A stretch of DNA of 42,876 bases, taken from contig FLMG01003988.1 of the NCBI GenBank assembly GCA_900088475.1, positions 1-42,876 of the forward strand, read 5' to 3'. This DNA is from Hyphochytrium catenoides (Eukaryota; Protista; Hyphochytriomycota). Below, piece after piece: positions 1,569-34,000 of the stretch (position 1 is the stretch's first letter; each line of letters begins with the position of its first letter). The notes below the pieces were generated by a model. That model saw only the letters and a list, made by a program, of their open reading frames with translations. It had not been told where the DNA came from and ran no database searches. Made by a program: the position numbers and the translations under genes.

Positions 1569-3625
1569 ATGCCAAGAGTTAACACCTGTTTAGCGGCGCT
1601 GCTGGTCGTCGGCGCGGCGCTCGTAGCATGCCCAGCGCAGGCTGAAGAGAGTGGCGCCAGCGGCCCCGTGGTCGGTATTGATCTTGGTACCACATACAGC
1701 TGCGTCGGCATCTACCAGAATGGCAAGGTGGACATCATTCTGAACGATCAGGGTAACCGTATCACTCCCTCCTATGTGGCTTGGGACAACAATGGCGAGC
1801 GTCTTATCGGTGATGCTGCCAAGAACCAGGCTACCATCAACCCTGAGAACACCGTTTTTGACGTCAAGCGCCTTATTGGCCGCCAGTGGGGCGATAAGTC
1901 CGTCCAGGCCGACAGGAAGCTCTTTCCCTTCAAGCTAGTCGAGAAGGATAACAAGCCTTACATCAGTGTGAACATCAAGGGCGAGCAGAAGACGTTTGCC
2001 CCTGAGGAGATCTCTGCTATGGTTCTGGGCAAGATGAAGCAGATTTCTGAGACCTACCTCGGCAAGGACGTCAAGGATGCTGTGGTCACCGTCCCTGCAT
2101 ACTTCAATGATGCTCAGCGCCAGGCTACCAAGGATGCTGGTGTCATTGCTGGCCTCAAGGTCCAACGTATCATCAACGAGCCTACTGCTGCTGCATTCGC
2201 CTACGGTCTGGACCGCCTGGACGTCGAGAAGAACATTCTTGTTTTTGACCTTGGAGGAGGAACATTTGATGTCACTCTCCTGACCATTGACCAGGGTGTC
2301 TTTGAGGTGCTTTCTACCAACGGAGATACCCATCTTGGTGGTGAGGACTTCGACCAGCGTGTGATGCAGTACTTCATCAAGATGCTCAAGAAGAAGCACA
2401 ACGTAGACATCTCTGGTGACAAGCGCGCTCTGCAGAAGCTGCGCCGCGAGGCTGAACGTGCTAAGAGAGCTCTGTCTAACAGCGCTCAGGTCCGCCTTGA
2501 GATTGAGTCTCTCGCTGAGGGCCACGACTTCAGCGAGACCCTTACTCGTGCTCGCTTTGAGGAACTCAACATGGATCTGTTCAAGAAGACTCTTGTCCCT
2601 GTAGGCAAGGTTCTCGCTGATGCTAAGCTGAAGAAGGAGGATGTAGATGAGATTGTACTTGTTGGTGGCTCCACTCGTATCCCTAAGGTCCAGCAGCTGC
2701 TTCAGGAGTACTTTAACGGCAAGGAGCTTCACCGCGGCATCAACCCAGATGAGGCTGTGGCATACGGTGCTGCGGTTCAGGGCGGCATCCTCAGTGGCAC
2801 CATCGACGACAAGCACTCCCAGGTTCTCCTTATTGATGTGGCTCCTCTGTCTCAGGGTATTGAGACCGTTGGTGGCGTTATGACCAAGATCATCAACAGA
2901 AACACCGCTATCCCCACCAAGAAGGCACAGACTTTCTCCACCTACCAGGACAACCAGCCTGCTGTGCTCATTCAGGTACTGTTGCCGTCTACTACTATTC
3001 TTTAGCTTGTCACCTGAGCGAAACGGCTCACATCTCTTTTCCTTGTTAGGTGTTCGAGGGTGAGCGTGCTATGACCAAGGACAACCACCTTCTAGGAAAG
3101 TTCGAGCTCACTGGTATCCCACCTGCTCCTCGCGGTGTCCCTCAGATTGAGGTGACGTTCGAGGTAGACGCCAATGGTATCCTTCAGGTGTCTGCTGAGG
3201 ACAAGGGCACGGGCAAGGCCCAGAAGATCACCATTACGGCTGACAAGGGAAGACTCTCCGAAGAAGAGATCCAGCGCATGGTTGACGAGGCAGAGCAGTA
3301 CAAAGAGCAGGATTCCAAGCTTAGAGAGAAAGTCACTGCAAGGAACGATCTTGAGGGTTACCTCTACCAGATGAAGAACCTCATTGAGGACGACGAGAAG
3401 GGCGTCGCAGATAAGATCAGCGAGAGTGACAAGGAGGCAGTAGAGGGCGCAGTCAAGGATGCCATTGAGTGGCTGGATGACAATCAGGAGGCAGATAGCG
3501 ATGACTATAAGTCCAAGAAGGAGGAAGTGGAGAAGATTGTCAAGCCAATCATCAGCAAGCTCTACGCAGGAGCCGGAGGCGCTGGAGGCGCTCCCGAAGA
3601 GGAGGATGAGCACGACGAGCTTTAG
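1569..3625 (+). CDS. BiP: ER luminal HSP70 chaperone BiP/GRP78, 660 aa; exons 1569-2975 and 3050-3625
   Basis: N-terminal signal peptide, HSP70 signatures [28 protein letters not shown] and [11 protein letters not shown], and a C-terminal HDEL-stop. The intron CAG|GTACTG...TTAG|GTG joins VLIQ|VFEGER in frame. Confidence 0.98.
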
Positions 3626-3945: not shown

Positions 3946-6900
3946 CTAACGAAAGCTTCTGGCGCTGGATGCTGACGAAGTACCTCTTTGTGCACCTTTT
4001 CGAGCCCTCTTCTCTCCTGACCTCCCACCTCGGCCCCCTGAAACGCCGCCAAGGCCCCTCTTATTCCCCACGCCAGCCCCTGTCTTGTTGCCTCTGCCCG
4101 CTCCTCTGCCGTCCCGGTTCCACCCGTTGTCTCCTCCTTCTTCTTTATTGGTGCAGTCAGGGGCCATATGACCTGCCGTCGCGCGGGGTCGCAAAAAAGC
4201 AAAGTGTCAGGGTGAGTATGAGCGGTCAGACATAGGAAGATATGAAAGCAGGTCCTTGTGGAAGACGGTAAGACATAAGGACAGCAAAGTGAAGATGCAG
4301 TATTCATGCTAGCAAAGACATCGTTCCACCTGCGCCGACAGGACTAACCTTCCTCGCCGCAAGAGTAGCAAGTGATCCCTCTTCCTCCTCCTCTGCCTCC
4401 AACACCGCGGCCTCGGATCCCTGCGCGGCCCCTGTTGGCAGCAGCGCTTCTAACTGACTGCTGTCCTCCGCCGTCGTCGAAAGCGAAGTAACCGCACGGC
4501 TCACACTTATAGTAAATCTTGCCCTGCGTAGGTCCTGGCTTCCTCACCGTGAGCGGAGCCAGGTCAGCTCGGCAAGTCGGGCATTTCGAGGAGCCATTAC
4601 TACTCTCAGCGGGCCCTCCTCTCACACCGCTCGACGGCAAACGTCCCGGTGCACCATTGGCCCTCAGTGGCGGCGGAGGATTGCCTGTGGCAAGACGAGA
4701 GTTGCCTCTCCCAGCTTGGGCATTGCCTCTTCCCCCTTGCGCAGTGCCACCTGCTTGCTGGGTCTGTCTGCCACCACCGCCTCCTCCACGTGGCGCGGCG
4801 GCCATCAACTCCTTGAGGTCGTCGCTGCACTGAAAACAAGCTACAGTCCCAGACAAAGGAAACGACATTAGATGAAGTCGAAGTGAGGTTTAGAGGCAAA
4901 CAATCAGATTAAACAAAGCAAAGTGCCGAACGTCTCCTTCTTGGAAAGGCCCGGGCCATGCGAAACGTTGCACTTTATCGGTAACTACCTTCGAAGCTCT
5001 GTGGTATGTACGGCGGAACGCTCCCAGGCGTGAAGGTAAGTGATATCTTCTTCACCGCACCTCGGCCTGGAATAGGTGGCGAACATGCTAAGTATTCAAT
5101 TGACGAGAAAGCAAGCTCACCCATAAGAGTAGTACTAAGTGAGGTACTAAAGTTGGCCACTACGATGCAGAAGTAAATAGATTGGCAGAGGACAGTCTCT
5201 AAGACTATCTGGAGCACGCAGCACTAGGAATGCAGGGGGAGCTTGACTCCATCTGCCTACCTGAGCGTTCACACCGATCGCAGGTGGATTGCAGACACTC
5301 AACGGTGCGGGTGCCCTGAAGAAGAATGTAAGAACGTCTTGTGGGCCTCAACCTTGCAGCTTTACAGACACAGAAGACGAGAGGATGAAGCGATGCGTAG
5401 GTCGGGGAATCGAACAAAACACATCTACTGACCTCTGGAAGCCAATTGCTCGTTCTGCACTGCAAGAATGAAAATGGGAGAGCAAGAACAGTCTGTTAGC
5501 AGAGCAGACAAACACTTCCAGGAAACTAAGCTGAGGTGCACCTCCGAGCAGGGAGAAGAGCTCCGTCTGACAAAAGATAAAAACACTCTAAGGATAAGCG
5601 ATTAAGGGATTCACCTCTGGGTAGCCCTTGCATGAGATAAGCCACTTATCTGTCCGTGTCTTCTTCAGAACCATTTCTGCCCGACCACAGGCAATGCAGC
5701 GACCAAGAGGCGTTTCTGTCCTCCCTGAGGCCTGTGGGCAGTTCGCAGTGCATTGAAAGCAGCGGAAGCCGCCACCCATATCCTAAGAGATCATAAATGA
5801 GTCAAGCCAGGGGCTAAGGAGGAGTATCGTATGTGCTAAAAGCTGCAGGAGCTGACTTGGAAGGGAGCTAGTGCAGCGAAGTGCGTGACTTTGATAGATC
5901 CTAAGCCCCAGGGAGCATCATTGCGGTCAAGTAACAGGGAGTAACAGCTATGATACCCATATGAAGTTTTACCTGTTGCCCCGTCATGCCCTCCGGGGGA
6001 TGACTGTAGCACCACGTGCAGAAAGAGTAGCCAGACCCTTGGTAACCGTCTCCTTCACTTACTGACAACACTGAAAACGTGCAGAGAGGGCATTGCAGGT
6101 TATCCAACCGAGAGAGACGACCATTGCGGGGAACCGAAAGAGCTATGTTGCATGTGGAGCAGCGTAAGAACCGCCGAGTGTTCCCTCCGCCTTCGTGTGG
6201 AACACTTGACCTGAGATCGCAAGGACGGAAGAGCAAGAATACACCTATCTTTAGCTTCTCCAATGATTCTAGGGCGTCAGTTGCTGGAAAACGGCATAAC
6301 CACTCCGGACTGAATATTCTCCACCTTTCTACCAAGCCCATTGTTTCCTGCTCATGCTCTATCAAACTGCGGTTGAGTGAAGAAGATCTACGGTATTCAC
6401 CACTTGCACCTGAAAGTCACCCCTCTCTAGTCTTCCTAGCAGCAAGTCTTACATAAGATCTAACGGGCCTCGACATCGGCCGCAGGTTCCTAGGTTATTC
6501 CTCAGAAGGTTTCCCTCTACGACCTCCTGCTGGCCCGCTCCCTCATAATGTCTCAGAACTGAATCTTCTAGTAGCTGAGCTTGTGCCGCCACTCCTTCAA
6601 ATACTTCTCGCATCTGAACAATGGCAGTTGACGATGAGTCCGTGTGCGCATATCCCTCTCCTTCTTACCCTTTATCTGCTTCCCCACCAAATCTTGTTCT
6701 CTCTACAACCTCCCCACCTCACTTTCTTCTCTCCACTAGTTTGCTGTTCAGTGAAGGTGTTCATTCTCCTCACTCTTTGCTTGTGATCCCTCGCTATCTT
6801 TGCTCCCGCTTGCCCCTTCTTGAACCTCCATTATCCTCATGTGGGCCTCCTTCGTTGCTACCAGTCTTCTTACCTCGGTGACACATGAACGAAGAACCTC

Positions 6901-9900
6901 CTCCGGCTGCTTCAGTCCATCGACCACGCTCTTGCAGTCCCTCTCCATCTTAAGACGAGTATAGAGCAAGAAGACCACAAAGTGAGGCATTTGTTTAGCT
7001 CTGCCGTCAACAGTAGTACCGTACTTCGCTATAGTACTGAGGGTTAGTACGCTCCAGAAAAAAGAACTTCACCTTTGCTCGTTTCTCAGGTTGAGCCAAT
7101 GGAAAGCCCATTTCCTCGTAGGCATTCACAAGCGCTAGCCCGAGGGGCGTAGGTTCAAACTGCTGGCCACCATTAACTCGTTTGACGTATGCACGGACTT
7201 GAATCTTCTTGATGTGTTCTGCCATAGTAGCATCTGTGCCGATACCGTGACGGTCCATAAGACCGATCAAATCTGGCTCAGAAAGCAAAGGAGGGGCCTG
7301 CGTGCGACCATCCTAAGAATGGAGAGGCTAATAGTTAGCTAATAGGCCAAAATGCTTTGGATGAATGTGAAAGGAGTGAGGAAGAGCGCTCTAGATAGCT
7401 AAGGATGACACGAGGGATCGCTTGCCAGACACTCCTCACCATCATGAGTATAGAAGAAGGTTGAAATCTCTCTCCCTGTTGGTACTGAGGGATCGTCTTG
7501 CCAGTCCACTTCTCGTAGGTGTAAACCTCCAGGTAGTTACGCTCAAGAACAATCAGGCCTGATGTGGAAAACTCCTCGCCAGCAATATCAATGGTAATCT
7601 GTCGTGGACAAGTGCAAGAAGGAGGATAGGGTTGGTATACTCGGTCGCATATCCACAGATGGTATAGGAACCACCAGCGGATGCTGATAAAGAGCCTTCG
7701 CTAAATTGAGGAGTATGTCCAGGTTGGAATCAGCTTAGCTAAAGGGAATAGATGCGTTTAGGCATACTGGACCGATAAGGGCCATGTAGCTTGTAACGTA
7801 TAGAACGATAGAGAGAGCCCAGAGTCCCACCTTCGTCTGATGTCCCACTGCGTTCCTGCTGCAGCAGGCGAGAAAATGTCTCACGACAAGTTCGTAAACT
7901 TTGCGCTCATCGCCCTCGAGCTATCGAACGAAGCGCAAATAGAGATTAGTGCCATGCAAATAAGAGTTTTGGCACATTATAATCAACCGGCAATGTGAAG
8001 GCTAAGATCTCTGCCGCGAAGCCTGGCCAATAAATATGGGCTGCGTGGCAACAACAAACCGAGCCTCTCGGAGGTAGGTATTGACCCCGGCGCCGTACCG
8101 TGTTCAGTTCCACAGCCTTGGTCGGATGAATGGGAGGATGGGCATTATCATCATTCGGGCCGCGAGCCGGAATCTCGAACTTGCCACCATTTATAAGGCC
8201 CTGGGCATATTCCCCCCACTTCAAGAGTCGTTAGGTCGTGACAATAGATAGATAAGGGACATGGTAAATGTATATCAGTGAGGCAAGACTTACCATTGAA
8301 TGGTGATCAAACGCTGAGATAAGTCCTGGAAGGGCGAGCAAGGAGGAAGTCGTGAGGCAAAAGAAAGTACCATTCGGAAAATGAGACCGTAAGCTCGCTC
8401 ATTGAAGAAAACAGCCTTACCAGCCAGATCAGTCCCTTCCTTGAACACTTCTGTCTCAGTACGAGGATAACTCAACAATCCGCGGTTATACAGCTAGATA
8501 GGGGACGGCAGTTAGAACTCTATATGGGCGAGGAAGTAAGCGATTGAAGTACATAAAGAGGTGCAGCTTGTAACCTTGGGCAGCTTAACCTACATTCTCG
8601 GCTACCGCCATTGCTCTGTCAGCAGATAGTCTCAGCCACCGCGTTGCCCGCTTTTGGAACTCTACCGTTGCTAGAGGAAGCGGCTTTCGCCTCTTGGTCT
8701 CCCGGCTCTCTATCTAAGAACAAGAGACAGACAAGAGAATGAGGCCTTAGCAACGGGCTTCAAAAAACGGTAACTGTGGATCTTACATCTATCACCACAG
8801 CTTCACTATGGGCCAGCACTGCCTCATAGAGTACCAAGCATGCGAGCCGATTGAACAGACGATTCCGCCGCCAGCTGAACTCCGCCTCAAGCTCTGAAAC
8901 CAAGCCATAAAGGAGTACAGAGGGTCAGAAACGTAGTAAAGCGGATGCCCATCAGGTCTTGGACACTCAGATGTGAATAGAGATATGTCATAGGGTAAAG
9001 AGACTTAAGAGAGCACTGGCAATGCGACGATATTGCACAGACCAAGAATAGAGCACGGGACAAAGCAGAAATGACAAGCTAGCTAATTTTTGGACATTGA
9101 CCAGTTGTTGAAGGGAAGACGAAAAGGAGAACCACCTTCATCTGTTCCTCTGTCTCTGCGCTTATCTAAGACTCTAATGTACCAGAAGTCCTCCGGCACG
9201 AAGGATTGAATCCGGTTGTAGCGTTGCACGACAAAGCCCAAAGTGGGGAATTGGCAAGGACCGTAGGAGATCAGCTGTATGTGAAGAATCACACGCGTGG
9301 TAAGATTCTAGTATCCTCCACGACGGACCGAGGCTCTCCCACCCTACCTGGCCGAGGCCTGCAAACTTGGTCTGCAGTCGCATTGTCTGGAATCTAGTGA
9401 AAGCCGATCCGAAGCGCAAGTCCAGCTCTTGTCGCGCGTCCACAGCCTTTTGTTTGTGTGTGATGGTTTAGCAGTGCATGCGGCCGAGAGAAGTACGGAA
9501 GGCTTAGTCATAATGATTGCAATTCGGAGGCAGCGGCCGCTGGTTGCTAGTAGGATGGGTCTAGGGGCTGAAGTAACGGCACAAGCTATATCTCAAGCAG
9601 TCACAGAACAAAAGCAGAGCTCTCAAGAGCACGTACTCGCCGCTCGAGACGAGGGAGAATAAGTAAGGGGTAAAAAAAGGAACGGACCTTCGCCATCCTC
9701 TCATTCACTCTGTTCAGCGCATTTATAGCGGCAAAGATGTCTCTGGGAATTAGAGCTGAGAACTTCGCGCGATAGACATCTAGACGGCGGTTAGCTTGCA
9801 AACAGATGTCCCGCACTTCGACAGCAATATTTTCCCCTTCCCTGTCACAATCCAGCCATAGGATGAGCCACTGTTCAGGCGAAGCAAACAATACCGGACT

Positions 9901-10504
9901 TAGACAACTCCTCTGGGTGGACCACGACTATGATCGAGATGAAAAACAGTCTGACCTGTGCTTTCCTAGCTTCCTGTTTTAGCGTTCTTTCTATCTTCTT
10001 GGAGGTGTCATCGCTCTTGACACTCTTCACGACGGGCGCCGTGAAGAGGTCGCGTGGATGACAGGACGACCAACCCCTGCCAAAGCGAGCCATAGTCAGA
10101 ACCAATGGTGGAGAAGCAGTATAGGGTAGCTTATGACCTTAGCTATCCCTTAGACGCAGTCAAAATGATGATTTAGAAGAGGGAGGCAGCTTGCAGTATC
10201 AGTTCACTTACCGTAGAGTGGGATCGAAGTCCATCTCCATAAGATGTCCCGTCACGGACGTGAAGATCATGTTTACATCTTGACCCATGGCAGACACGGA
10301 GAACTCAAAGACGGCGTTGTAAGGACTGTGTCCATCCCGCTGGTGCAATCATGCGGAGAGCTGTGAGTTCCGAAGCACGGGAGGTAAGAAAGTAAGGTTC
10401 TCTGCCCTGCGTACGCTTACCCGTCGAGCTGAGTTTCTACTTAGGATGGCCGAGACTTCCTTAGCGACCGAGGGCTTCTCAGCCACATTCAGAGCGGTTA
10501 TCAT
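3946..10504 (-). CDS. TOP3A: DNA topoisomerase III alpha (type IA), ~1071 aa, 23 exons: 10504-10421, 10339-10212, 10076-9956, 9870-9688, 9446-9348, 9274-9136, 8893-8787, 8713-8594, 8493-8421, 8325-8294, 8218-8099, 7920-7831, 7598-7440, 7312-7073, 6948-6874, 6613-6453, 6210-5973, 5782-5615, 5459-5433, 5315-5261, 5066-4989, 4840-4349, 4172-3946
   Basis: [12 protein letters not shown] start, [18 protein letters not shown] (TOPRIM), [13 protein letters not shown], catalytic [16 protein letters not shown] and GIGTDAT. C-terminal Cys4 zinc ribbons, a GRF-type finger (CPTC...[17 protein letters not shown]), a CCHC knuckle (CYSCGEEG|HMAPDC) and an RGG tail. All 22 introns are GT-AG and exon lengths sum to 3216 nt in frame. 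Confidence 0.95.
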
Positions 10505-11291
10505 CGTATCATCCCAGGGTCATACGTCTTTATTCCCCGAAGTGGGTCTGAGAATAACTGCGGCAAGAGCTTCATTGAGAACTATAAGTTGGCCCATGTG
10601 AAATGGATGCTTGACTATCCATCTTGAGCCAAGCTTCCTATACTAGGTCGTAGCAGCCACCCTGTCATACGCTAGAACATGCTCCACCTGGATTCCACTT
10701 CCACCTCCCATGGAGGCAGCGGTACAGTCGCCACGCTCCTCGGCAAATTTTGAGTCAGCTAGGACAGTGGTTCTTCACTCCTACAGCCAGACCAACAACC
10801 CAGCGAAGCACTTACACCAGCCTCTTGACTGTGAAGCTTCCAGCACTTAATGATGCCGAGTTATAGAACATAGAACTCCTACTTGTACACAGTTCTCGAA
10901 TCAGAGCTTTCGGTCTTCAATAATGCGAAACCGCGAAAATGGAGACGAATTTGCCGCGATCCGGCAGCCGCTAACGTCCGATTTTGGGACATCGGCTGAT
11001 TGATGATGAAGAAAACCTCTTTCTCACTCTTTCTCACATCATTGGTAGCCTGCAGATCAGGCTTCGGGCCACACCTTGAAGATTCTGGCTTCCATCCTGC
11101 AGCTCAGACGGCCACATCCGGCCTCATGTTGCCAAGGATGAGATGGAAGCGTAAGCTCTCTTGGTCCTTACAGCAAGGACAGGTCCAACCTCAATGGCAG
11201 GCGCTAAGGCGTGATTATGGTCGGGCAAGGTGCTACTGGTGACGTGCTCAGTCTACGGCTTTGAATCCAAAGGCAAGGGATGGACCAGAGC
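10505..11291. promoter_or_regulatory. Divergent (head-to-head) intergenic region shared by TOP3A and RNPC3, with E2F-like motifs CCGCGAAA (10931-10938) and TTTGCCGC (10950-10957)
   Basis: 787 bp between the two start codons; two matches to TTTSSCGS in opposite orientation near the midpoint. Function not demonstrated. Confidence 0.35.
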
Positions 11292-13364
11292 ATGGCGAAG
11301 TACGTACTTCTTGTCAAGAATCTTCCGCCGACACTGCCCAGGTCGGCCATTGAGAAGCTTTTCAGGCACTTTGGGGCCACAGAAATCCGCCTTCTAAATG
11401 AAAAAAGTTCTAAGGTACCTTAGACTTGCAAACCTTCTTGGACTCACTTCGTTCGCTCCGTCTCCTTCCGCTACGCTTTACTGATATCACTGCCCTGCTG
11501 CAATCACAGAGAGGGCCTGCCTTTGTAGAGTTTGCAGATGAAGCGTCATTACATCGCGGCCGCGCCAAGCTAGATGGGCTGACCCTAGGCGATAAAAAGC
11601 TTTCTGCCACGGTTCATGTGCCCGAGGGGACAGCTGAGGACAAGGAGCGGGTCCGGAGGCATATCAGTGGCCCAAATCACGGTCAAGCTGAGGCCGCGGA
11701 TCTGGCGGGCTTGCAAAGGCCCGCGGGCAGTCCTGTGAGGTACAGGAATCGTATCCTTTCACCCCAACAGCAACCCACTCTTATCACTGTTTCGACAAGT
11801 CCCTTGCACTGAACATTCCAAGAGGCAGAAAGCTAAGATTAGCTGGTTCTTTCGCTCTTGCTCTGTGATTGATTCCCCTTCTATCCCCCAGAGCCCATTA
11901 GGCATATTGACCTTGACTTCTATAATAGACTTGCTCGTGGTCATCACACCAGGTTGCCGGAGAGTGCGCATGGAGCAGGCACCTTGTTCGCACATCCCGG
12001 TGTGGCGCCGCCCGCAGTCCTTCAGCTTCCAGTCGCATCATCTCTCTCCCCAGAGCTAGGGTAAGGGCCAGCAATTATGGCTCACTCTTCCTTTGAGAAT
12101 AGTGCTCATCCTCTAGAATCTCTTCCTCCGCCTTCCAACCCCATCGCCTCTCTTCGCTTCAGCTGGCATAAGTATCAGTCCTGACAGGCGGTTCTGCAAT
12201 AGGCTCCATTACCCTCCATCGCCTCTTCTTCAATACAGCTATCCTCCGCCGTCAGCAGCTGTCCTGACAAACATCATGAATGGTAAGCAGGCAAGATCCG
12301 TATTACCTTGATGGCTGTTCATCCACTTAGAATAGGCCCTTGGACTTCATTATCTTATTACGTAGCCCTCCTAGCAGTCCCAAAGTTCTACGAGCAGGCA
12401 CTTCATCTCATGAACAAGATGAATCTTCCTTGTCCGTTTACTTCGGAGCCATTCCCATCAGTCCCCATGCCTGCGACGCAGGTAACGCCGATAGTAGGTT
12501 TCTATCTGCTCCAGAGGTTGATGGCTTGTCTCTCTGCTTGCAGCCGAACGACCCCTTACTGGCGACAGATGAGTCAGAGCTCGAGTCGGATGATGAAAAG
12601 GATAAGGGGATTGCCCCTCTAAGAGAAGAACCAGAGACTGGTCCCACCAAGAGACCTGCCGTCCATGAAATAGCAAGAGAAAAGCCAAGCAGCGTCACCG
12701 CTGGGGCGGTAATTTTAAAAGGAAAGAGACGGAAGCTGGAGTCTCAACCATCTACATCGTCCAATTTTCTGTCTGAAGCGTCATTATACACTCGACCTGG
12801 GGTGGCCACCGCTAAGGAATTGTCTGACGGCCGGCTATCCAAAGATGGTAGGAGTCCCTATAAGCAATCGAATAGACAACCTTGCTCTAACGGGACCGCA
12901 GTTCTTTTGTCTGAACACGCCAAATTGATGGCAAACTATGCTCCTGGCGAGCCCTCAGAGACCCTTTATGTTAAAAATGTGGCAAGGACGGTGGAGGCTT
13001 CGGATCTTGAATACCTTCTTGGTGGGCTCTTTCCAACTCAAGAGGAGCAGATCAGGTGTGTCAAGAAGGCTCCTACATTCTGGCTCTATAATCTGGTTCA
13101 CCCGCCTAAAGACGGACTTTCCGTTCTCTTCGAAGCAGCGGCATGAATGTGAAACTGTTTAAGGAGGGTAGGATGAAGGGCCAAGCGTTTATCACATTCC
13201 AGTCCTTAGTCTTGGCTCAGCGTGCGTGTGACTTGGTCCACGGATTTATGCTAGAAGGCAGGCCGCTAATAGTGGTAAGAAGAAATGCCAGCGTCGTGGC
13301 TGTAACGTTGTCTCTAATTTTTCTCCGACAGATGTTTCGCCGCCAACAGCAGAATGCCTCCTAG
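11292..13364 (+). CDS. RNPC3: RNPC3 / U11/U12 di-snRNP 65K protein, ~435 aa; exons 11292-11414, 11510-11739, 11929(or 11953)-12060, 12203-12282, 12366-12481, 12544-12847, 12902-13055, 13139(or 13136)-13274, 13332-13364
   Basis: N-terminal RRM (LLVKNLP...FRHFGA...PAFVEF). Diagnostic central block LGLHYPPSPLLQYSYPPP...TNIMNALLAVPKFYEQALHLMNKMNLPCPF. Acidic DESELESDDE. C-terminal RRM NYAPGEPSETLYVKNVA...KEGRMKGQAFITF...HGFMLEGRPLIV. Exons sum to 1308 nt in frame. Confidence 0.93.
11751..11928 (+). other. Putative U12-type (minor) GT-AG intron, 178 nt, nested in and competing with U2-type intron 2 of RNPC3
   Basis: 5' end GTATCCTTT at 11751-11759 matches the U12 donor consensus RTATCCTTT. Branch CCTTGAC at 11911-11917 matches the core of TCCTTRAC, with branch A 11916 lying 12 nt from the TAG acceptor ending at 11928. 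Confidence 0.7.
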
Positions 13365-15564
13365 CGTCATTCCTCCTATCACCTCCTGAAAAAACGGCTA
13401 CTGCTGCGCCTTAGTAAGGAGCAGATTCAGAAAACGACCGAGTGGATCACCATCGTGGCCCCATCTGTCCGTGTTTCGGGAGCTTCTGGCTTGCTGGCAA
13501 GTCAGCGTCATCCCTGAGCAGAACTTCGTCGTGAGAAGGGAGCAGCTTCTCTTCAAGCAGACTTTCTCTTCAGAATTACCTACAGTTGTCTGGCTCCTGT
13601 GACTATAGTAGAGTGGAGGACCAGCGGACGCCTGTCAAGTCAATGCCCCGGACCTAGGGTTTGCAATAACGTCGGCCTCTAGCTTGAAAGTTCTCATGAC
13701 CGAGCATGTAGGCTGTTCTTAAGTGCTGGACATCAGTGTGCTTCTAAGGCGCGCGATACCCCAGCGTAGATCAGATAGATTACTGATGATCTTGTCTCTT
13801 TTTTGCAGCAATCGCCCCTATAGGGTTATGTAAGCAGTTCGGTGCAGCCTCTGACAATGTCCTGAGTACATTTGGCCATATATGATGACACAATCTATTA
13901 AATGCGGTGACGAAGAGACATCTCTTCTGATGAAGAACCTGTGCTAAAGTCTATTGGCCCAGGGTTATATCGCAAGACCGAGAGCAAATTGTTTTCTCAT
14001 TAATGGCATAACATTCTCCGCCACTTGGAGAGGGGAAAGCCCTCGTGTCTTCTGGCGATGGCTGAGGCGAAAGTGCTAGCTAGATCGTAAATGCTTTCGT
14101 GATGCATCTGAGGTACAGAACAACGGACTTCTTCCGCCGCCACTCTGTTATCAACAGCAGCCTAGAGCTAATAAGAAAGAACGAAGCTTCAAAGCTCTAC
14201 CAGTACTAGTCCTTTGCGTAGAAGCCATTGGCCTCGGTTCCGTCGTCTAGAACTGAGAGTCAATCAGTCAACTAGCTCAACCGCTACAAAAGAAGGGCTA
14301 CTTGTCCAGGAGCCGGTTCTCCACAATCGACCTATTCGAAGGAGTTAGTGGTGCCATGCCAGTCCTCTTCCTCTCGAGCACCTGTAGGACCTCAGGGCAG
14401 GTCCAGCGGCATTGTGACACATATCTGTTCACTCCTGCTAAGTCAAGAATTGTCCCGTTCACCGCCTTGTCCCCTCCAGCTACGTGTGGAAGTCCTGCTG
14501 GCTCGGGACGGTCCCATGCCATACCCATCCGGGTATCCGGTAGAGGTCTGCCTAGCTCTTTGACTCGTAGGTATTGACCCGAGGAAGAGACAAAATTTAG
14601 ATTGGTCGCAGTAGGCAGTCCTCACTTGTGCAGTATATGACAGCTATTATGTGCGAGTCAAGCATGAGAGCACTTGGCCCAAGAGTAAAGAACTAAGCTC
14701 GGGTGAAGTGGATACTGCCACGGGTCCCGTGCTGATCCCAGGAGAACATTAGAGTAGCCTCAGCATTACGAGAGCATGTCCGAGGTGGCAAGGTGTATCG
14801 CTGAAGTCACGGACTACAGATTTATTTATTGGGCAGGGACGTACTCCTTGGACAACTGACAGTGCGTGGCTCGGGCAAGGAAAAGCTGAGACGCCATTGC
14901 GGACGCCACGAGACGGTCCCTCGTATCTGTGGAGGAGAGGCTCCTGCTGCTGCTGCTGCTGCTAAAGCTGCGGAGTGAAGGGTCACTACTGCTGCCAAGA
15001 CACTGAAGATGAGGCTTTGGACTGTGGGCTCTTGGACGGACAAGTAAACTAGCGAATTCTGGATCTTAAGAGTTCTCATCATGAGCCAGAAGGCGATCCG
15101 TGACATGAATGCAGGTAGGAATGGGCATGTCCTTTATACAAACGAGGGAGCTCTTATAAGCTCTGTAGACTGCAGAAGGGCCCCAATAACGCAATAAGGT
15201 CCCGATCGGCCTAGCTGTCAAGTTACTAAGGTCAGATAACTGAATCCAATAGTTCTTGCTTGTGGTTACCTATGGTTGGCTTCGCACTTTCACTTCATAC
15301 AATCCCCGAGACCTCCTAGAATTGAACTCTAGAAGAGGCTGGCTTCTCGCACTTCCATCCTTCTTCCTTCCAGTCATCTCCATTGCAGCAGCAGGAGAGC
15401 TCCATATGCTATCAGAAAGACATCCACTCACAGCTGACGAAGGCTTCGAGCTTCATCACATATCATCCAGAGCAAAAGCATTGATCTCAGGTGGAAGAGC
15501 TCCCCAAGCCCCACACTGAGACATCTGAGTCAGAGTATCATCTTCTCCCTTTCATTAGAGAGCC

Positions 15565-23034: not shown

Positions 23035-25118
23035 TTAAAACTTATGCCTTCCGAACCCGGTCGTAGTGTTTGAAGTGCTCGAGCTACTGAGGCTAGTGGG
23101 CAGACTGCCGCCTAGCCCACCGCCTGCCAGATACTTTGCCTGTGCTTGGAACGGATTTCGATTGCTATTTTGTGTGCTACTCGTGCCTGAGAAACCTAAT
23201 TTAACATCAAGTGTCAGGGTCGGGTGCCATGGACCTGTGCAGTTGAGGTTCATACCACTATCACCGCTGCTGATGGCGCCGGGAACATATCGTGCTTGTT
23301 TGGTGTACTTGTTGCTGATATTGAGGCTGCGTGGAGCGAGGGAAAGAGAACTGCAGTAAGAACAGGGCTCTGCCAGGGTTATGCTCCTCATACGGAGGAT
23401 TGTCACCCAAGATAATAGAAAAAGGCACATGAAGGGGTGCAACGGGATTAGAGCGGCAGATTTTACGAAGGAGCGGAAGTCAGATAGCAGAGAAATTTGT
23501 GCGCCATACCTTCCCAAAGCGCTATTGGTACTAGTGTAGGAGTTACTTAGGCCTCCTATCGACGAGGGTGCCCCGTAGTTTGAGCTAGTTCCGGAGAGTG
23601 ATGAAAGGTTTGATGACCCAAAAGTGCTCGTAGGCGAAAGAGTTGAAGAGCCAAAGGAGCTTGTGGCGTTGGTGCTGACGTTGCTTGTCCCAAACTTAGA
23701 GGTGAATGTGGAATAACTGGGATTATAGGAAAGAGAGGATGACGAATCTTTGTCCTTGTCACCATTGCCTGGCAGTGTGTAGGGTTTGGTCTGCTTGAGC
23801 GGTGCTGCGCTGGTGTGGAAGGTTCCTGTGTCAAAAGAGAACTCATCATCGTCATTCTTGATTTCTTTCTTGTTCCTACTGCTGCTGAAGTCATTCGATG
23901 GTTGAACAGCGCTGATCTGATTGTGGTTGCTTTCATTCTCCGGCCGACGCGGGGTCTGGTTCTGTGTGGGCTTTGAGGGAACTTCATGGTCTAGCTTTAA
24001 ACTATCGTCAGGAGGTGGAAGTTTTTCTGGAAGCCCTACTCCGACCTGCTCAAAAGATCAACGCAACGCGAGACAATCGAATGTTAAAGGGCCAGAGGTC
24101 TGGCAGAACGGCGCGGATTAGAAGAACTCACCTGGAAAAATGGATATTGTAGAGCTTGGCTCGCTGTGGGTCTCTTGTTAGGGTCGTAATTCAGTAGATC
24201 TGTCATTAGCTGTATAGCCTCAGGGCTGGCGTGGGGAATGATTGTCGACAAAGGTGTGGCCACAAATTGAGGAAACTTGAAGTTCATCTGTGTGGCAAGC
24301 TTTAACCCCTCAGGCCAAACTTTCGCCGTTGGAGAACCCAGAACAGAGCAAATTTTATAGAGCTCGTCGGCTTCACTGCTCCCTGGGAAGAGCGGTCGAA
24401 GAGTGTATAACTCAGCCATGATGCAACCCATGGCCCAATTATCAATAGGAGAATTGTAACTGGTTGAGCGAAGTAGCACTTCTGGCGCTCTGTACCACCG
24501 CGTTGACACGTAATCCGTGAAAGGTGGTTTTGATCGAATCTCTCGTGCTAGCCCAAAGTCTGCAACCTTCAGTGTCTCGCCCTTGACTAGCATGTTTTCA
24601 GGCTTGATATCTCGATGAAAGAACCCATGCTTATGCATAAACGCTAGGCCTTGAAACATTTGATACCTTCATCCACGGACGTTAGAAGGGCCCACAGTTC
24701 AATAAGAGACAGCCGTCACGTACATGACATTCCTGATCTTTGACTCTGGCAAATTTCTGTCCCTATTCTTGGTCATTTCATAGAGATTTTCTTCCATGAA
24801 CTCGAAGACGAAATAGAGTTCGTCATTCTCTCTAATAACCTCTTTGAGCTTTACGATATTGGGATGATTCAACTTTTTCAATGACTGTTGCCGGAGAGTA
24901 AAACGTTAGTTGGCCCGAAAGTTCAAGCTCATGAACTTTGACGGCATATGTCTTGAGCTTACCTTGACTTCCCTAAGGGCCATGCACTCTTCCCATGTGT
25001 AAAACTTTTTCTTCATCTTCTTGATGGCCACAACTTCGCCCGTCGATTTGTTCACGGCTTTGAGGACACTGCCATAGGTGCCATCACCAAGCTGCTTGGT
25101 GATTTTATAACGATTCAT
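23035..25118 (-). CDS. MAK: MAK/ICK (RCK family, CMGC) Ser/Thr kinase; exons 25118-24963, 24884-24724, 24666-24132, 24045-23510, 23326-23035 (possible extra 60-nt in-frame intron 23255-23196)
   Basis: MNRYK...LGDGTYGSV...[77 protein letters not shown] (TDY activation loop), followed by a Ser-rich tail ending GFGRHKF. Confidence 0.95.
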
Positions 25119-26815: not shown

Positions 26816-28684
26816 TTATGGCTCAGAAAGAATTGACTTGTCTTTTAGAAAGAACGCCGCAGAGCGCGGCGGGATGTAAAGCATAGTGCTTCCCGAAGAA
26901 AGTGTCATCCTCTTAGGACTGTCGGGATGGAACTCATCCAGCACGTTAATATACGTCCCTGGCTCTAATGTGCCGATAGAGCTCAGGTTGATCGTCAAGG
27001 TCGAGCCAGACTTGTTGATAATGCCTAATGCGTAGTTGCCTCTGGTCCATACAAGATGGTTATCCCAGTTCATCTCATTTGTCCAATGCCAATAGATGCT
27101 AGAACCCAACGTAACCTGACGGAACTTGATCATCTGCGGGATCAAAGGCCTAGAGAGGGGGCGACCATTGAACTCCATCCTACGGTGGAAGTTCTCATAC
27201 TGATTCAGGAAGATCTCCGCGTCCTTGTCCGCGCCCCGGTCGGAATAAACATACGGCAGTCCGCCCCTCTTGCCAAAGATAAAGGCAAACGCTAACATCT
27301 CATCAACCTCATCCGGGTACTTGAGGTACAGAAAGGCATCATTTGTGGGGATGTCATGGTTCATAATGAAAGTGAGAGACCGCTCGGCGTCCAGCGCTGC
27401 CTTAGGGTCGCGAGCAAACATTCCGTAGGGCATAACGTCGACAACCTTTCGGAGGCTGCCACCAATTTTGAAGGCCTGACGGAGCTCAGTCGTCAGCGGA
27501 AAGTCGTAGAATAAGACGCGCTTGTCAGCAGTGGCAAGAGAAGGACCGAGCGATGTGTCATAGTTATTCTTGTCACCAATTACTTCCGCTAGGAGCACCA
27601 TATCGTCTTCTATGATGGGGCCAAGAGGTCCCTCGGCAGAGTCTGTCACAGGAGCAAAGAGAGACTCAAAGTACTCTGGATTAACATGCTTGTACGCGTC
27701 GAAGCGGAATCCCTTGACGCCATAGCTCTTCAGCCTGAGAAGATACGCTCGCTGTTCCCGCAACACCACTGGGTTAGGTGGCAGGCGTCGCCCTCCAGCA
27801 TTGCCTGCGTCAATCCCTACATTCAGATCAAGCAATCCCTGAGGCACACGGAAGTCGTTGAGCCGCCAGTAGCGCGATTGGAATGGGATGTCATAGTTCT
27901 CCACGTTTTTCGTCTCGTACCAGGGAGAGGTCACGTTGTAGATGATGGCTGGGTTGCTGCACTGAGAGCCAGAGCAGGTGGATTTGTAGACGTTCTTGCC
28001 CGAGAAGAGAGGTCCAGTAACCGGAGAAGTTACCCAGGATTGGCTCTTTACGTCCCACGTGCGGTAGGTGTACCTCTTGGCTGCGTAGTTCTCATAGATT
28101 GCTGAGGGAGGAATGGTGATCATGTCCTTGTCTTTATAGTCCCGGTCAACGTCTGGATAGTGCAGCATATGGTTGAGGACAATGTCGATGATAATCCTGA
28201 CTCCCGCTTTCTCGGCAGCGGCCATCATCTCTTCAAAATCCTGCTGGCTTCCCAGCGGCCCGTCGATAACGCGATAATCTAGCGGCTGGTAGCGCTTGTA
28301 CCAGGAGCGAGGAGTGTCCCCGTTGACACTGGCCACATCGCTCTCCAGGGACAAAGTAGGCGGTGATACATGGAGGTGCGTGTACCCTAGGCTCAGCAAG
28401 GAAACCTTTTGCATCTCCGCCGTGATATCCTTGAATCGCCAGTTGAACAACTGAAGGACGGTGTAGGGCAGCTCCCCAGGAATAGCAGCGCGTGCAATCT
28501 TCCGCTTGCATGGTCCATCAACAACTTGGTGGTCAAACTCCGTTGATCTTCGAAGATAGGTGTCTTCTCTGTACTGGTCTGATGCCACACAAGAGTCCGC
28601 GTGGTAGATAGAAAAGGAACAGAGCGCAATCAACAGCGCCTGCAGGAGCAAGACTCCTCTACCCGGCACATGGTAGAGCTTCAT
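26816..28684 (-). CDS. Secreted alpha-amylase, GH13 (resembles proteobacterial subfamily GH13_27), 622 aa, intronless
   Basis: Signal-peptide-like N-terminus. GH13 regions: LQLFNW, WYKRYQPLDYRVIDGPLG, DIVLNH (I), GFRFDAYKH (II, nucleophile D), AEVIG (III, acid/base E), FIMNHD (IV). C-terminal beta-sandwich segment TRGNYALGIINKS...LEPGTYINVL. Confidence 0.9.
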   Translation of the reverse strand: MKLYHVPGRGVLLLQALLIALCSFSIYHADSCVASDQYREDTYLRRSTEFDHQVVDGPCKRKIARAAIPGELPYTVLQLFNWRFKDITAEMQKVSLLSLGYTHLHVSPPTLSLESDVASVNGDTPRSWYKRYQPLDYRVIDGPLGSQQDFEEMMAAAEKAGVRIIIDIVLNHMLHYPDVDRDYKDKDMITIPPSAIYENYAAKRYTYRTWDVKSQSWVTSPVTGPLFSGKNVYKSTCSGSQCSNPAIIYNVTSPWYETKNVENYDIPFQSRYWRLNDFRVPQGLLDLNVGIDAGNAGGRRLPPNPVVLREQRAYLLRLKSYGVKGFRFDAYKHVNPEYFESLFAPVTDSAEGPLGPIIEDDMVLLAEVIGDKNNYDTSLGPSLATADKRVLFYDFPLTTELRQAFKIGGSLRKVVDVMPYGMFARDPKAALDAERSLTFIMNHDIPTNDAFLYLKYPDEVDEMLAFAFIFGKRGGLPYVYSDRGADKDAEIFLNQYENFHRRMEFNGRPLSRPLIPQMIKFRQVTLGSSIYWHWTNEMNWDNHLVWTRGNYALGIINKSGSTLTINLSSIGTLEPGTYINVLDEFHPDSPKRMTLSSGSTMLYIPPRSAAFFLKDKSILSEP

Positions 28685-29366
28685 CCTTTGGCTTACAAGG
28701 CCGCCACAAGCCTCTTTATGAACGACCTAGTCCCCTGTGGCTGCGCCTGACAGGTTGACTCAACGTTTGGTAGGCCACGCAACCGATGATATGAGCAGAG
28801 TTGTGCAACTGACGACCGCATCGGGCAGCGGGCATCAGCATGAAGACTGTGGGCGGGAGATAGGCGGCCATGTCTCACGGATGGCTGTCACCCTGGCTTC
28901 CCAAGAGATGAACCCCCATTCTTTCTCATCAAAGATAACAGGGAAGCTGCTCCTCCTGCGGCCTTGTGATGATCCAACTCTTACAAGGGTAAAGATCAGC
29001 CCTAGCTCCTAATGATATGACCCAAGTACACGCCTACGACTGGTCTCACGCCGCTGGCAGGAAGAGAAGAGAGCTTGAGAGAACGACCGTGGCGTTCCCA
29101 TAGTTCTATGTGCCCGGCCTACTAGCGAAGGGATCCTGGCCATAGAAGTGAGTTGATGGTGGCTTCTTAGTCAGAAAGTTGAAGGCGGCGGGTAAAGTGA
29201 TAGCAAAAGATAGTCTTCTATGCTCAGGGAGATAAATGATAATGAATAAGAAGTAAGTTCAAAGAGCAGGGTTCTGATCTGTGCTCGCTGTTGCTCTTGA
29301 AGATGACTCTGCCGACTCCAAAGAACGTGGAGAGTTGAAGAGCCAGAAAGAAAACGAGCATGTACG

Positions 29367-29369
<3 letters not shown>

Positions 29370-29414
<45 letters not shown>

Positions 29415-29520
29415 TAAGAGAGAGAGACAGAGAGAACGAGAGAGAGAGAAAGAGAAAGAGAGAGAGAAAGGAGTTTGAGAGGGTGAGAGAGGAGAGGAGA
29501 AAAAAAGAAAGAAGAAACAA
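29370..29520. repeat. (GA)n / purine-rich microsatellite tract
   Basis: Long AGAGAGAG runs visible directly. Confidence 0.9.
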
Positions 29521-30964
29521 GGTAAGACAGCGGCCGGATAACATGAGAGACGGGCTTTATTATTCATCAAAGTTCTCTGGGGCTGCCTCGAGGACAAAAT
29601 AAGACCGTGAAGAGTGAGAGAGACGGACGTCGGGGCCTGCCCAGTCTTGAGATTGTCTAGACGCGCGCTCGACCGAATAAAGTGATAGAAGAACGACCGG
29701 TAGAACTACTGGCCCGTGACCATCGCCCATAAAAAGAGAGCTACTGCTGAGAAGAACGGTAGATCTATAGGCCAAAGAGCGGTGTCGTCCGGCCCATTGC
29801 CGACCGATGACTGAGAAGCATCAGGACCTCAGAGCTCATGGTACGCCGCTCTTGGACGTGCCTCTGTCTAGCACATATGGCCGCTAATACTGATCGAGGT
29901 CTAAACTTCAAGATCTGGGGATAGAAGAGGACATGACTTGTCCTAGGAGTACCGTGCTGCTGCCGCCCTACGAGACACCATCGTCTTGTTTGCATTCAGC
30001 GCTAGGCATTTCCTCTCGGTCACTAACAGGACGGCGAGATATGTCCAAGACTGTCCATCAGTCCATCAGCATCAGCCAAGGCAAGCACGTGAAGGCGAGC
30101 AACAGCAGCAAGGCAAGATCTTGATGTGAGTCACTCCGCCCGCTGTCTCGCGTCTTCTTCCTTGTCTTCTTCACCGACTGCTTCTAGGGCGCCCCCGTTC
30201 TGCGGTCTTAGACTTTATCCTCCTGTTTCTGGCTGCATCATCCGCCCGGGGCAGCTGCTGCTGAAGGCCATGTTATCTGCGCGGCACCAGCATCCACTGC
30301 GTCCACTTTATCTGAGCGGAAGGACAGGTACAACGACGCAGCGAGAAGATGATGGTCTAGTGATGAGCGTGGTGGACGGTCAGAGAGGGCGAAACGATTG
30401 AGGAGATGAAGGATACGGCTTCTCTGTCTTCTTATGCGGCCTTGTACCGACTGCTGAAGCTGCTCAGCTGATGACAGAACGTTGTCAACATTATCATCCT
30501 TTGTGATAGAAGACAAGAATAGGAGACAGCAGTAGGTCTACTTTATATGAACACAGCTAATAATGACGCCAAACGCGACAGATAGAGCTCATCAGTCCAT
30601 CCACAGACAGCCGCCGCCCTTCCGTCAGCACCAGCGATGAGACGTTATGGGTCCTCTTGGCCAGGCTGTATCCAAACTCTGCATCAGCCATTCTAGACGG
30701 AATCAGTCGAGCTGCAGAGGTAGGGCTTCGGCAAGGGATAAGGGGCAGCCATAGGACCGGTGGACCTCTTCCGCCGCCAGATAGACTTTCTAGCTCCAGT
30801 CGCCCTAGGATACGTAGCTAGCGAGCGCTCTGTATGTGTGCGTCTCTCTCTCTTTCTTTGCGTCTCTCTCTCTCTTCTTTTTTGGTCTGTCACTCTCTCT
30901 GTCTGGTGCATCTCTCTCCCACTCTCGCTTGCTCCTCTCTCCTTCATAAACCGCTGCCCTATCT

Positions 30965-30969
<5 letters not shown>

Positions 30970-30998
<29 letters not shown>

Positions 30999-31034
30999 NN
31001 NNNNNNNNNNNNNNNNNNNNNNNNNNNNNNNNNN
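30970..31034. repeat. (TC)n microsatellite abutting an assembly gap (N 30999-31034)
   Basis: TCTCTC run followed by 36 Ns. Confidence 0.9.
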
Positions 31035-31043
31035 CTATGACAC

Positions 31044-34000
31044 CTATCCACCGTCCACTTGCTCTCCTCCTCCTTCACCTAACAAGGCTAACTCTGTCTT
31101 CCTCCTCCAGCCTGCAGACAGACCTCGACTTCTCCTCCTCGCGCTCTGATGGTGGGGAGACACTTCAAAGATCTCAAAGCGGCACTTGAGCATGACGCAC
31201 TCCAGCGGCCGCGTGAAGGCCAAGAAGACCAGGCGGACGCACAGAATGAAGATCGTCACTCCGCGGTTGATAGCAAACTGCCTTATAGACAGCGACCAGG
31301 CCGAGAGCTCCTCTTCACCATCGTTTGGCCGAAGAACGATGCGTCCACGAGCCAAGTCCAGCCTTGGATCACAGGTGGTGTTTGCCTGGTCCTCGTCCTC
31401 TCCCGGAAGAGGCTCCAGCCAGCCAGCAGCCAGCAGTGCAAACATGATGAAGGCTGTGAGGAAGAGAGCCACTAAGAGAAAGGCCAAGCTCTGTCGTCTG
31501 GAAGCTGCTGGAAAGGAATCATACGAAGCGGCAATGACAGCGCCGACAAAGTAAGCTGCAGACCAGAAGAGCCCTGGGAAGCTGAAGCACCAGAGACCGC
31601 CCCAGGAAGAGACCTGGAAGAGCAGGAGCTCCAGAAGCATGAAGCGCATGTCAAACGTCTGCAGGAGACTAGACAATATCCGATAGTTCATGCTGCCTGT
31701 GTAGACGACAGCGCACCAGCAGGACGAGAGAAACGCTGCCACTGCGAGTCCGCTTAGCCAGACCTTTTCCTCCTGCATGTTGGCAGCACGGAGGTGCTCT
31801 AGCACGCCTATGAAGAGAGACATCGTACAGAAGACAAAGACAAACCACGTGACAGTGGCTAACATCCTCTTCCGCCGGCGCAGCCAGCTACGGACCGCGC
31901 TTTCTTGTCCTAGAAAGCACTTCATGACTGTCATTCTGCTCTCCTCTTCCGTGAACTCTCGATTGGGGCGGTGCGCGACCAGGTAGAGCCGCCTCTGACC
32001 AAAGGTAGGAGAGAGAAAGAGAAGAGAAGAGAGAGAAGCCGACGTCGCCGAGAGGAAGAAGGCTTTGGATAGAGAGAAAGGAGGACGCAGAGGAGGGGAG
32101 GACGGGGATAATGCACGCTCATCTTGCTGGGGAAGAGAAGCAGGGGAGAGAGGAGGAGAAGAGAGACTCTTGGCGGCAGAAGAAGAAGAGACTGTGGCTG
32201 GTGTCTTGGTCTGTCTCTCTACTGAGCTTCTTCTCTCTTCCCGAGCTGGATCTGCTGCTATTGCAGGCTGCCGTCGTAACTGCGAGCTCCGGCTTATGTT
32301 TCCTGTCTCCTGGCTCTTCTTCTTCCTGGAAGAGAAAGAGGAACAACGAGCCGTGGAGCGCTGGATCTGGTTGAGAAGCTTGGCGATGGAGAGAAGCGAG
32401 AACCGCAGCTGTGGATCGTCAAAAACTGGGGCAGAAATGAGCCAGCGCTGGAAAGAGGGAAAGAGCTGCTGCTGAAAGTACCTCAGCTTTCCTTCACTTA
32501 CTCTCTTCTCTCTCTTCCTCTCCTCTCCTTCTCTCGTCTCGTCATCTTCTCTTCCTCCTTTTCTCTCTCCTCTTTCTTCCACTGCTGCTCTTTCTCTCTT
32601 CTGCTCCTCTTTATCTTTGTTAGGTGGCGAAGGAGGAGAGAAGGGACGGCAGAAGAGCGGCTGAGGAGCCTTGTCTTCTTCTTCTCTTTCTGTTTCTTCT
32701 CTTTCTCGTCTGCTGTTGTCTGCTACTGGATCATGCGGCTGAAGGGGAAGAGAGAGAGCAGTGCCTGTGGAGAGAGGAGAGGAAAGCCCTGTACGGAGGA
32801 TGTCTTCTTCCTCTTTCTTCTTCCTGGAGGAAAGGGAAGAAAGGTACTCTTCTTCCTTCTCTTCTTCTCCGGACGGCACCACCTCTACCTTTGCAGGGCG
32901 TCTCCCCCACTTGCCCCCGCTATTATCCTGATCTCCGTACTGGCTCTGACTCGCCTGTGGTTGGATTGCTTGCGGAGCTGGGGACGAGAGGAGAGGAGAG
33001 ACGACAGGAGGAGAGGAAGACAAGGCCTCCAGCCTGGCCGAGCCTGAAGCTTCTTCTCGCTGTCCTTCTTCTTTCTCTCTCGCGTCTTCCCGCTTCTCTT
33101 CCTCCTCCTGCTCTTCCTCTTCCTCCTCCCCCTCCTCCTCCTGGACCTTCTCAACCAGCTTGACCCTTGACTTCAGCGTCACACTGAGCCGCGGGTTGCG
33201 ATAGATAGAGCCGCAGAGCCTAGCTACGAGGATGACCAAGGTGTACAGGCGGTTGACAGCAAACTCCAAGAGAGAGAAGCGGACCTGGCGCCCTTCTCCC
33301 CCTGGCGAGCCAAGGGAAGGCCCCCAGACCCACTCGAGAGCACCGGCATCGCCTCTGTCATTGCCTAAAGAGGAACTGCCAACCTCTGCAGCTGCGTCTG
33401 AAGGCTGCTGCGGCGCCCATTCAAGNNNNNNNNNNNNNNNNNNNNNNNNNNNNNNNNNNNNNNNNNNNNNNNNNNCCATGACAGAAGAGAGTGACAAGAA
33501 AGACAGAGTCAAGCACGTCACTGTTCCTCTTCGAACAGGCGCTGGGCAGCAGTCCAAGAAGAGAAGAAGGCTGAAGCCCATGCACAACGTTAGGGATCCC
33601 AGGTATGCCGTGGCCGTGAAGCACCAAAGGCCGGCACACGCAGCGGCAAACAGCGCCACGTGCACAGCCAAAAAGCCAGCGTCAAAGCTCTTCAAGGTCC
33701 ACTTGAGCAGCTGCAGGTTAGCCACAGAAGCGTGGAAGAGCAGGATCCAGAGACATCCAAACACTGCTACCAAGCCAGGGAAGAATCGGTCTGTGAGAGA
33801 TGTAGGAAGAATGAAACAGAGTGCCGTCAAGATGAGGACCAAGAGTGCGATAAGAAGGGTGAGATATATCAGCCAGCGCCTTTGCAAGGAAGAAAGAGCG
33901 AATTGCTCCTGGCCCAAGAGCCTCATCAATGCTGTCTCCCGGGCCAGTCTGCCTGGCAGACAAAGGAAAGGCGTCACCGCCTGGAGAGAGTACTGCCGCC

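Follow-up and report, generated by a model that had tools for sequence, protein, structure and literature searches.

Introduction

In the human gene CCDC84 (CENATAC), a U2-type donor joined to a U12-type acceptor gives the coding mRNA, and use of the U12-type sites gives a transcript with a premature stop (PMC6800510). The ratio of the U12 (premature stop) form to the U2 (coding) form is about 65:35 in controls and about 15:85 in cells from Taybi-Linder syndrome (TALS), in which U4atac is defective (PMC6800510). The CENATAC donors are conserved in animals and have been read as an autoregulatory circuit (PMC8280824; PMC8329584). We describe here a locus with a similar layout, intron 2 of the gene for RNPC3 (U11/U12-65K, below 65K) in the protist Hyphochytrium catenoides, where a consensus U12-type donor follows a U2-type donor at a distance of 11 nucleotides (nt). 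The locus lies on contig FLMG01003988.1, in a stretch of 42,876 nt that we call the window; all positions given are window positions, and all features of the RNPC3 locus are on the plus strand.

The likeness to CENATAC is close. Each is a gene for a minor-spliceosome protein, with competing U2 and U12 donors and one 3′ splice site, where the U2 path leads to the full-length protein and the U12 path to a premature stop. For RNPC3 both donors in one intron, the productive U2 outcome and the premature-stop U12 outcome are read from sequence alone, whereas the CENATAC forms have been seen as RNA and the CENATAC donors are phylogenetically conserved. The cases also differ in protein and host: 65K is the bridge of the U11/U12 di-snRNP (di-small nuclear ribonucleoprotein), here in a stramenopile-like protist, and CENATAC is a U4atac/U6atac factor, in animals. 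An earlier sequence-only reading of the window had held that this lineage uses a different design for its feedback; that claim is not supported, as the same design is documented for CENATAC/CCDC84 (PMC6800510, PMC8280824, PMC8329584). Intron 2 would add to the CENATAC kind a case from another gene and a remote lineage.

Animal 65K is feedback-regulated through U11 binding (PMC5473595). The U11 snRNP-binding splicing enhancer (USSE) consists of tandem U12 5′ splice site motifs that are not used as donors and that, through exon definition, activate an upstream U2 3′ splice site; the USSE of 65K acts on the 3′ untranslated region (PMC8329584). With the USSEs of animal 65K and of animal and plant U11-48K, the RNPC3 locus would share the principle that U11, by recognizing a sequence like a U12 5′ splice site, sends the pre-mRNA into an unproductive form (PMC5473595, PMC8329584), and 65K is a common target. 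It differs in having a single motif in a coding-region intron, paired with a branch site and so itself spliceable. Allowing at most one mismatch, the U12 donor motif has no second match in 11000-14300, save a poor GTCTCCTTC at 11460, and the one motif follows a donor, at 11 nt, and not an acceptor. No USSE-like element was found in the 3′ region of RNPC3 up to 14300. On these features (one motif, following a donor, paired with a branch site) the contrast with the USSE drawn in the earlier reading stands.

Drosophila prospero and vertebrate SRSF10 resemble the RNPC3 locus in that the two spliceosomes compete on closely spaced sites in one intron. In those genes the AT-AC U12 intron encloses a U2 intron and splicing by the U12 path is productive; in RNPC3, by contrast, the U2 intron encloses the U12 intron, which starts inside it at the 5′ end and has the same 3′ end, and the U12 path would be unproductive. 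In the negative regulator of splicing (NRS) of Rous sarcoma virus (RSV), U1 and U11 sites reportedly overlap (Hibbert 1999, as cited in PMC8329584).

Splice signals of intron 2

The end of exon 2 and the start of the intron (11720-11760) read ...CCT GTG AG/GTACAGGAATC/GTATCCTTTC, with the first GT at 11740. This GT belongs to a U2-type donor, AG/GTACAG (GAG/GTACAG; 11738-11745), which starts the intron at 11740, is in frame with acceptors at 11928 and 11952, and is about as strong as the donor of RNPC3 intron 1, AAG/GTACCT. By this path the intron is 189 nt long. The U12-type 5′ splice site, GTATCCTTT (11751-11759), matches the consensus RTATCCTT(T) at nine of nine positions and lies 11 nt 3′ of the U2 donor. 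It is unchanged in every contig assembled from the DNA runs.

At the other end of the intron, the branch motif CCTTGAC (11911-11917) has its A at 11916. Taken with the preceding base, aCCTTGAC matches seven of the eight positions of the U12 consensus TCCTTRAC; it can serve as a U2 branch site (TTGAC) too. The TAG acceptor (11926-11928) ends 12 nt past the branch A and is probably common to both spliceosomes. The branch site of a U12 intron (TCCTTRAY) is expected at about 10-20 nt from the 3′ splice site, and the optimal distance is 11-13 nt (PMC3584512). Intron 2 has, by its sequence, a U12-type 5′ splice site without a mismatch and a branch A spaced 12 nt from AG. Directly after the TAG, an AC dinucleotide (11929-11930) lies 14 nt past the branch A and would end an in-frame GT-AC intron, 11751-11930. 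Further CAG acceptors end at 11952 and 11978.

RNA folding around the donors was unremarkable, with z-scores of 0.75 and 0.33 and no structure masking either donor. The positions of the motifs in the sequence-only reading (11740, 11751, 11911-11917, 11928, 11952) were all confirmed when the sequence was read again.

RNPC3 gene model and identity

The RNPC3 (U11/U12-65K) gene (11280-13364) was modelled with nine exons and a 439-aa product, and the spliced model translates without a stop. Exons 1 to 5 are at 11280-11414, 11510-11739, 11929-12060, 12203-12282 and 12366-12481, and exons 6 to 9 at 12544-12847, 12902-13055, 13139-13274 and 13332-13364. In a domain search, Pfam RRM_1 (RRM, RNA recognition motif) was matched by exons 1, 2 and 8. 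For exon 7, the top solved-structure matches (E = 2e-5) were 5OBN and 3EGN, both structures of the RNA-binding protein 40 (RNPC3) C-terminal RRM; RBM41, an RNPC3 paralog, came next. The exon 5 peptide had no match in the solved-structure search.

When four orthologs were aligned with the model they showed 32-39% identity, including the central block LG-LHYPP..., PKFY..LHLMNKMNLP. The N-terminal part resembles the oomycete-like proteins P0002 and P0008 in the alignment. The predicted protein has an N-terminal RRM, a central Pro-rich/PKFY..LHLMNKMNLP block, and a C-terminal RRM with an N-terminal extension. Because of the RRM_1 matches, the structure matches of exon 7 (3EGN/5OBN) and the aligned central block, the gene is identified as the U11/U12-65K ortholog, in agreement with the name that it had been given from the letters of the window.

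Reading frames and products

Donor 11740, joined to 11929 or 11953, keeps the frame into ...SPELG/LHYPP. When donor 11751 is joined to either of these positions, translation runs through ...RYRNHLLVV...LSPQS to a stop, giving a 164-aa product. After U12 GT-AG splicing (11750^11929) this stop is the TAG at 12057-12059, 1 nt before the junction of exon 3 and intron 3 and with six introns downstream. Retention of intron 2 also meets a stop, the TGA at 11810-11812, which closes an open reading frame (ORF) at 11426-11812. Translation thus bears out the frames proposed earlier for the two donors and for the retained intron; what the earlier frame analysis overlooked is the in-frame AC at 11929-11930.

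A constitutive U12 intron is expected to restore the frame when it is removed. Removal of GT(11751)-AG(11928) does not, and only the GT-AC form, ending at 11930, or the AG at 11978 fits. Although donor 11751 joined to 11979 is in frame, the CAG ending at 11978 was rejected as a U12 acceptor, being 62 nt away from the branch A at 11916 and without a branch motif close by. The sequence-only reading had named this productive junction as an outcome that would count against it, and the junction is unlikely on these grounds.

Other routes to a productive U12 form were tried and rejected. A hidden frame or an indel could make the U12 GT-AG product productive, but the frame has stops near 11634 and 11686, and no indel of exon 2 was found in the DNA contigs. 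Alternative donors in exon 3 could rescue the U12 frame (GTGGCG at 12002 and two poor sites fit), but each would delete the conserved Pro-rich/LG segment. Sequential (nested) splicing would leave a second intron of just 35 nt.

There remains the junction to 11931, where the U12 donor is in frame and gives ...PVRYRN-LARG... in place of ...PVR-LARG..., adding YRN. Intron 2 could on this ground be an ordinary productive minor intron with GT-AC termini, in which 11750 is joined to 11931 and the protein has 442 aa with YRN. GTACAG would then be a U2 donor present by chance or as a back-up, and the products of both paths would function. U12 3′ sites reportedly tolerate several terminal nucleotides. 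The junction keeps the frame, the distance of 14 nt from branch to intron end is inside the tolerated range, and the LARG past the junction aligns with the LAKG of an oomycete ortholog in both in-frame versions. We nevertheless consider this quite unlikely. An AG stands at the optimal 12 nt, two bases upstream of the AC end, and the chance of an in-frame AG/GTA donor within 11 nt is only about 1-8% (a rough estimate). Mixed termini such as GT-AC are apparently disfavoured among natural U12 introns (PMC3584512).

A human mutation bears on the same point. In LKB1 (STK11), IVS2+1A>G turned an AT-AC intron into GT...AC, and the result is cryptic splicing by both spliceosomes, not clean GT-AC removal (PMC8329584). 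As in the GT...AG/AC geometry of RNPC3, a consensus U12 donor that starts with G there faces an AC 3′ end, and neighbouring 3′ sites and cryptic U2 sites are used. The LKB1 change is a disease mutation, whereas the RNPC3 state is fixed in the available reads and compensated by the in-frame U2 donor. Because the AG at 12 nt is within the optimum, GT-AC is disfavoured and LKB1 +1A>G goes to cryptic sites, the frame-shifted GT-AG form is the expected U12 product of RNPC3.

Chance expectation

The window holds five matches to RTATCCTT, with 1.68 expected from shuffles. The other four lie in a BiP coding exon (3177), antisense to an amylase ORF (28425), and in stretches without a convincing ORF (26077 and 30409). 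Their positions are consistent with the earlier statement that no other intron of the window has a U12-like donor. The match at 3177, GTATCCTT, is ordinary BiP coding sequence (NGILQV).

As the donor motif is one part of a U12 intron, we also scanned both strands for a composite pattern, defined as RTATCCTT, then CCTTRAC 30-500 nt on, then AG or AC 10-15 nt after the branch A. The composite occurs once in the 43-kb window, in RNPC3 intron 2. Its expectation anywhere in such a window is about 0.07-0.2 (analytic, from the measured motif frequencies), and, for an intron of RNPC3 on the sense strand, lies lower by orders of magnitude. We conclude that intron 2 is, as far as its motifs can tell, genuinely U12-competent.

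The branch motif is worth less as evidence than a full 7-mer, since CTTGAC fits the U2 branch consensus of this organism too. Other RNPC3 introns carry CTGAC, CTAAC or TTGAT at 11-27 nt before AG (CTGAC at 18 in intron 3, TTGAT at 22 in intron 5, CTAAC at 11 in intron 6), so that CTTGAC at 12 nt from AG is normal for a U2 intron of RNPC3. Intron 2 might then be a plain U2 intron, whose U12-like donor is a chance match or is bound by U11 and never spliced. Chance 8-mers near donors of interesting genes are to be expected when thousands of windows are scanned, and RTATCCTT does occur four more times here, outside any intron. What makes this explanation improbable, in our judgement, is that a 9/9 donor with an optimally spaced CCTTRAC is found just once in the window, and in a gene of the minor spliceosome; the joint chance for RNPC3 is about 1e-4 (a rough estimate).

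Alleles and distant orthologs

Three runs of the organism (X1-X3), found via the neighbouring BiP gene, are DNA; their contigs pass through the introns without joints (2.6 kb). The same search gave metagenome and metatranscriptome runs as well, and a further run, X4, had nothing over these 2.6 kb. The contigs show two haplotypes. In a contig pair across 11743-11927 there are 12 substitutions and six gap positions, all within 11773-11897 (about 125 nt), and the flanks of the intron, 11743-11772 and 11897-11927, are identical between the alleles. A contig at 11440-11772 has no change at either donor. Neither allele has thus lost a donor, the branch motif or the acceptor; the support from this is weak, intron ends being conserved in any intron. 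Outside the middle of intron 2, the haplotypes of RNPC3 differ by about 1-2%. The X1 and X2 contigs have different pairs of exon 2 variants (11524/11569 versus 11690/11703), a hint of more than two haplotypes.

A homolog search with the 268-aa open frame found nothing, and exon 2 had no match in a scan of metagenomes. Exons 6-7, in an exhaustive HMMER search, had matches to 12 distant proteins only, among them the four orthologs aligned above, and a metagenome scan with exon 5 found 13 distant RNPC3-like loci. DNA was compared for these 13 metagenome loci and for the four orthologs mapped on public genomes (L001-L004), 17 in all. Two of the loci, L005 and L007, have one RTATCCTT each, 2.9 kb upstream of the gene.

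The region of intron 2 varies among the mapped orthologs. In L001 the same linker, which cannot be aligned, contains a U2-type intron at some point. In the fungal-looking ortholog P0004, the annotated 'intron' (L002:827-919) encodes an in-frame Pro-rich segment that ends ...APLLG before a GTAAC donor, and the public gene model of P0004 probably mis-splices it. Two other introns are common to the protist, oomycete-like and fungal-like genomes: one in the first RRM, before the RNP1 strand (11415-11509), and one at LG/[LI]xY, before the conserved core (12061-12202). Their positions are shared across distant lineages, which suggests that both introns are old.

The alleles and orthologs bear on a further explanation, that intron 2 is an evolutionary intermediate with no regulatory role. 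By this account a former AT-AC intron, 11751-11930, changed its first base from A to G, the U2 donor and the TAG took over, and the U12 motif was left behind only recently, any use of it being splicing noise. An AT-AC ancestry is attractive because the AC is exactly in frame: an A at 11751 would make 11751-11930 a classical AT-AC intron, in frame and with 14 nt between the branch A and AC. Nested U2/U12 sites have been discussed as intermediates of U12-to-U2 conversion, and human LKB1 +1A>G gives cryptic splicing by both spliceosomes (both PMC8329584). At the position of intron 2 the orthologs have no U12 motif at all. Still, an unselected 9/9 donor with a branch motif that makes premature-stop transcripts should decay fast or be selected against; both alleles hold the motifs intact despite the highly diverged middle of the intron; and the host gene belongs to a small class autoregulated via U11 binding. 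A relic without function is thus a minority view for us, unlikely though not negligible. AT-AC ancestry itself is compatible with later co-option as a switch, and a change of the first base to G in an in-frame AT-AC intron may have given rise to the switch.

Other features of the window

Upstream of RNPC3, an endoplasmic reticulum-type HSP70 (BiP, with an HDEL end) is encoded at 1569-3625 on the plus strand, in open frames 1569-3005 and 3050-3625 with one short intron near 2980-3055. Between BiP and RNPC3, at about 5900-10500 on the minus strand, lies a multi-intron gene whose ORF fragments resemble DNA topoisomerase III.

Further along the window, exon fragments at 24699-25118 (minus strand) resemble the N-terminus of a MAK/ICK (RCK-family) protein kinase, and the amylase ORF mentioned above (26816-28684, minus strand) is intronless and encodes 622 aa; an exact look-up of the protein in the public gene collection gave no record. 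At 29224-29602 and 30760-34610 there are a CT/GA-rich simple-sequence region and runs of N (assembly gaps, read as X), the latter both in and next to a minus-strand ORF of 1188 aa for a low-complexity membrane protein. A search for small nuclear RNA genes (Rfam) and tRNA genes found none in the window.

Proposed feedback and its significance

The 65K protein bridges U11 and U12 in the di-snRNP. Since di-snRNP assembly needs 65K, the abundance of 65K could limit its own production. In the circuit that we propose, the major spliceosome would join GTACAG at 11740 to the TAG at 11928 and give full-length 65K. The U11/U12 di-snRNP would recognize GTATCCTTT at 11751 and CCTTGAC at 11911-11917 and use the same TAG, which would add 11 nt to the message and bring in the stop at 12057-12059. 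As this stop lies upstream of six introns, the outcome of the U12 path would be either a truncated protein with only the first RRM or a substrate of nonsense-mediated decay (NMD). U11 bound at 11751 might alternatively have its effect simply by blocking U1, only 11 nt away. More 65K would mean more di-snRNP, more poison splicing (or more block by U11) and then less 65K, a homeostatic negative feedback.

From this layout we infer use of both sites, a common 3′ site, degradation of the poison isoform and a balance of the two forms that tracks minor-spliceosome activity. That the U2 and U12 spliceosomes compete for RNPC3 intron 2 in a CENATAC-like switch that limits 65K is a serious candidate explanation, which we stop just short of calling probable. 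We put forward with some reserve the broader idea that 65K is regulated by a poison minor intron that can itself be spliced and that sits within a U2 intron, a circuit convergent with CENATAC and functionally equivalent to the 65K USSE.

Several observations weigh against such a switch. The in-frame AC at 11929-11930 permits a productive reading of the U12 donor. CTTGAC or TTGAC at 12 nt before AG is also a normal U2 branch site in this organism, and identical intron ends between alleles are expected of any intron. A search of RNA runs on RNPC3 listed no run from the organism. Sense RTATCCTT was found inside the gene in none of the 17 distant RNPC3 loci, the nearest orthologs being 32-39% identical, and the oomycete-like genes L003 and L004 lack an intron at this position. 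Because none of the 17 loci holds the motif in sense within the gene, the tandem-donor arrangement appears, from these comparisons, to be lineage-specific.

Even as a mere relic, intron 2 would show a U12 intron caught in the course of becoming a U2 intron. If it works as proposed, it would be a very compact natural reporter of minor-spliceosome activity, with 11 nt between the donors and an intron of 189 nt. A working feedback in the 65K gene, built like the CENATAC switch, would mean that such control evolved repeatedly and by different cis-designs. Minor-spliceosome feedback via U11 recognition would then recur across eukaryotic supergroups as a principle that is perhaps ancient.

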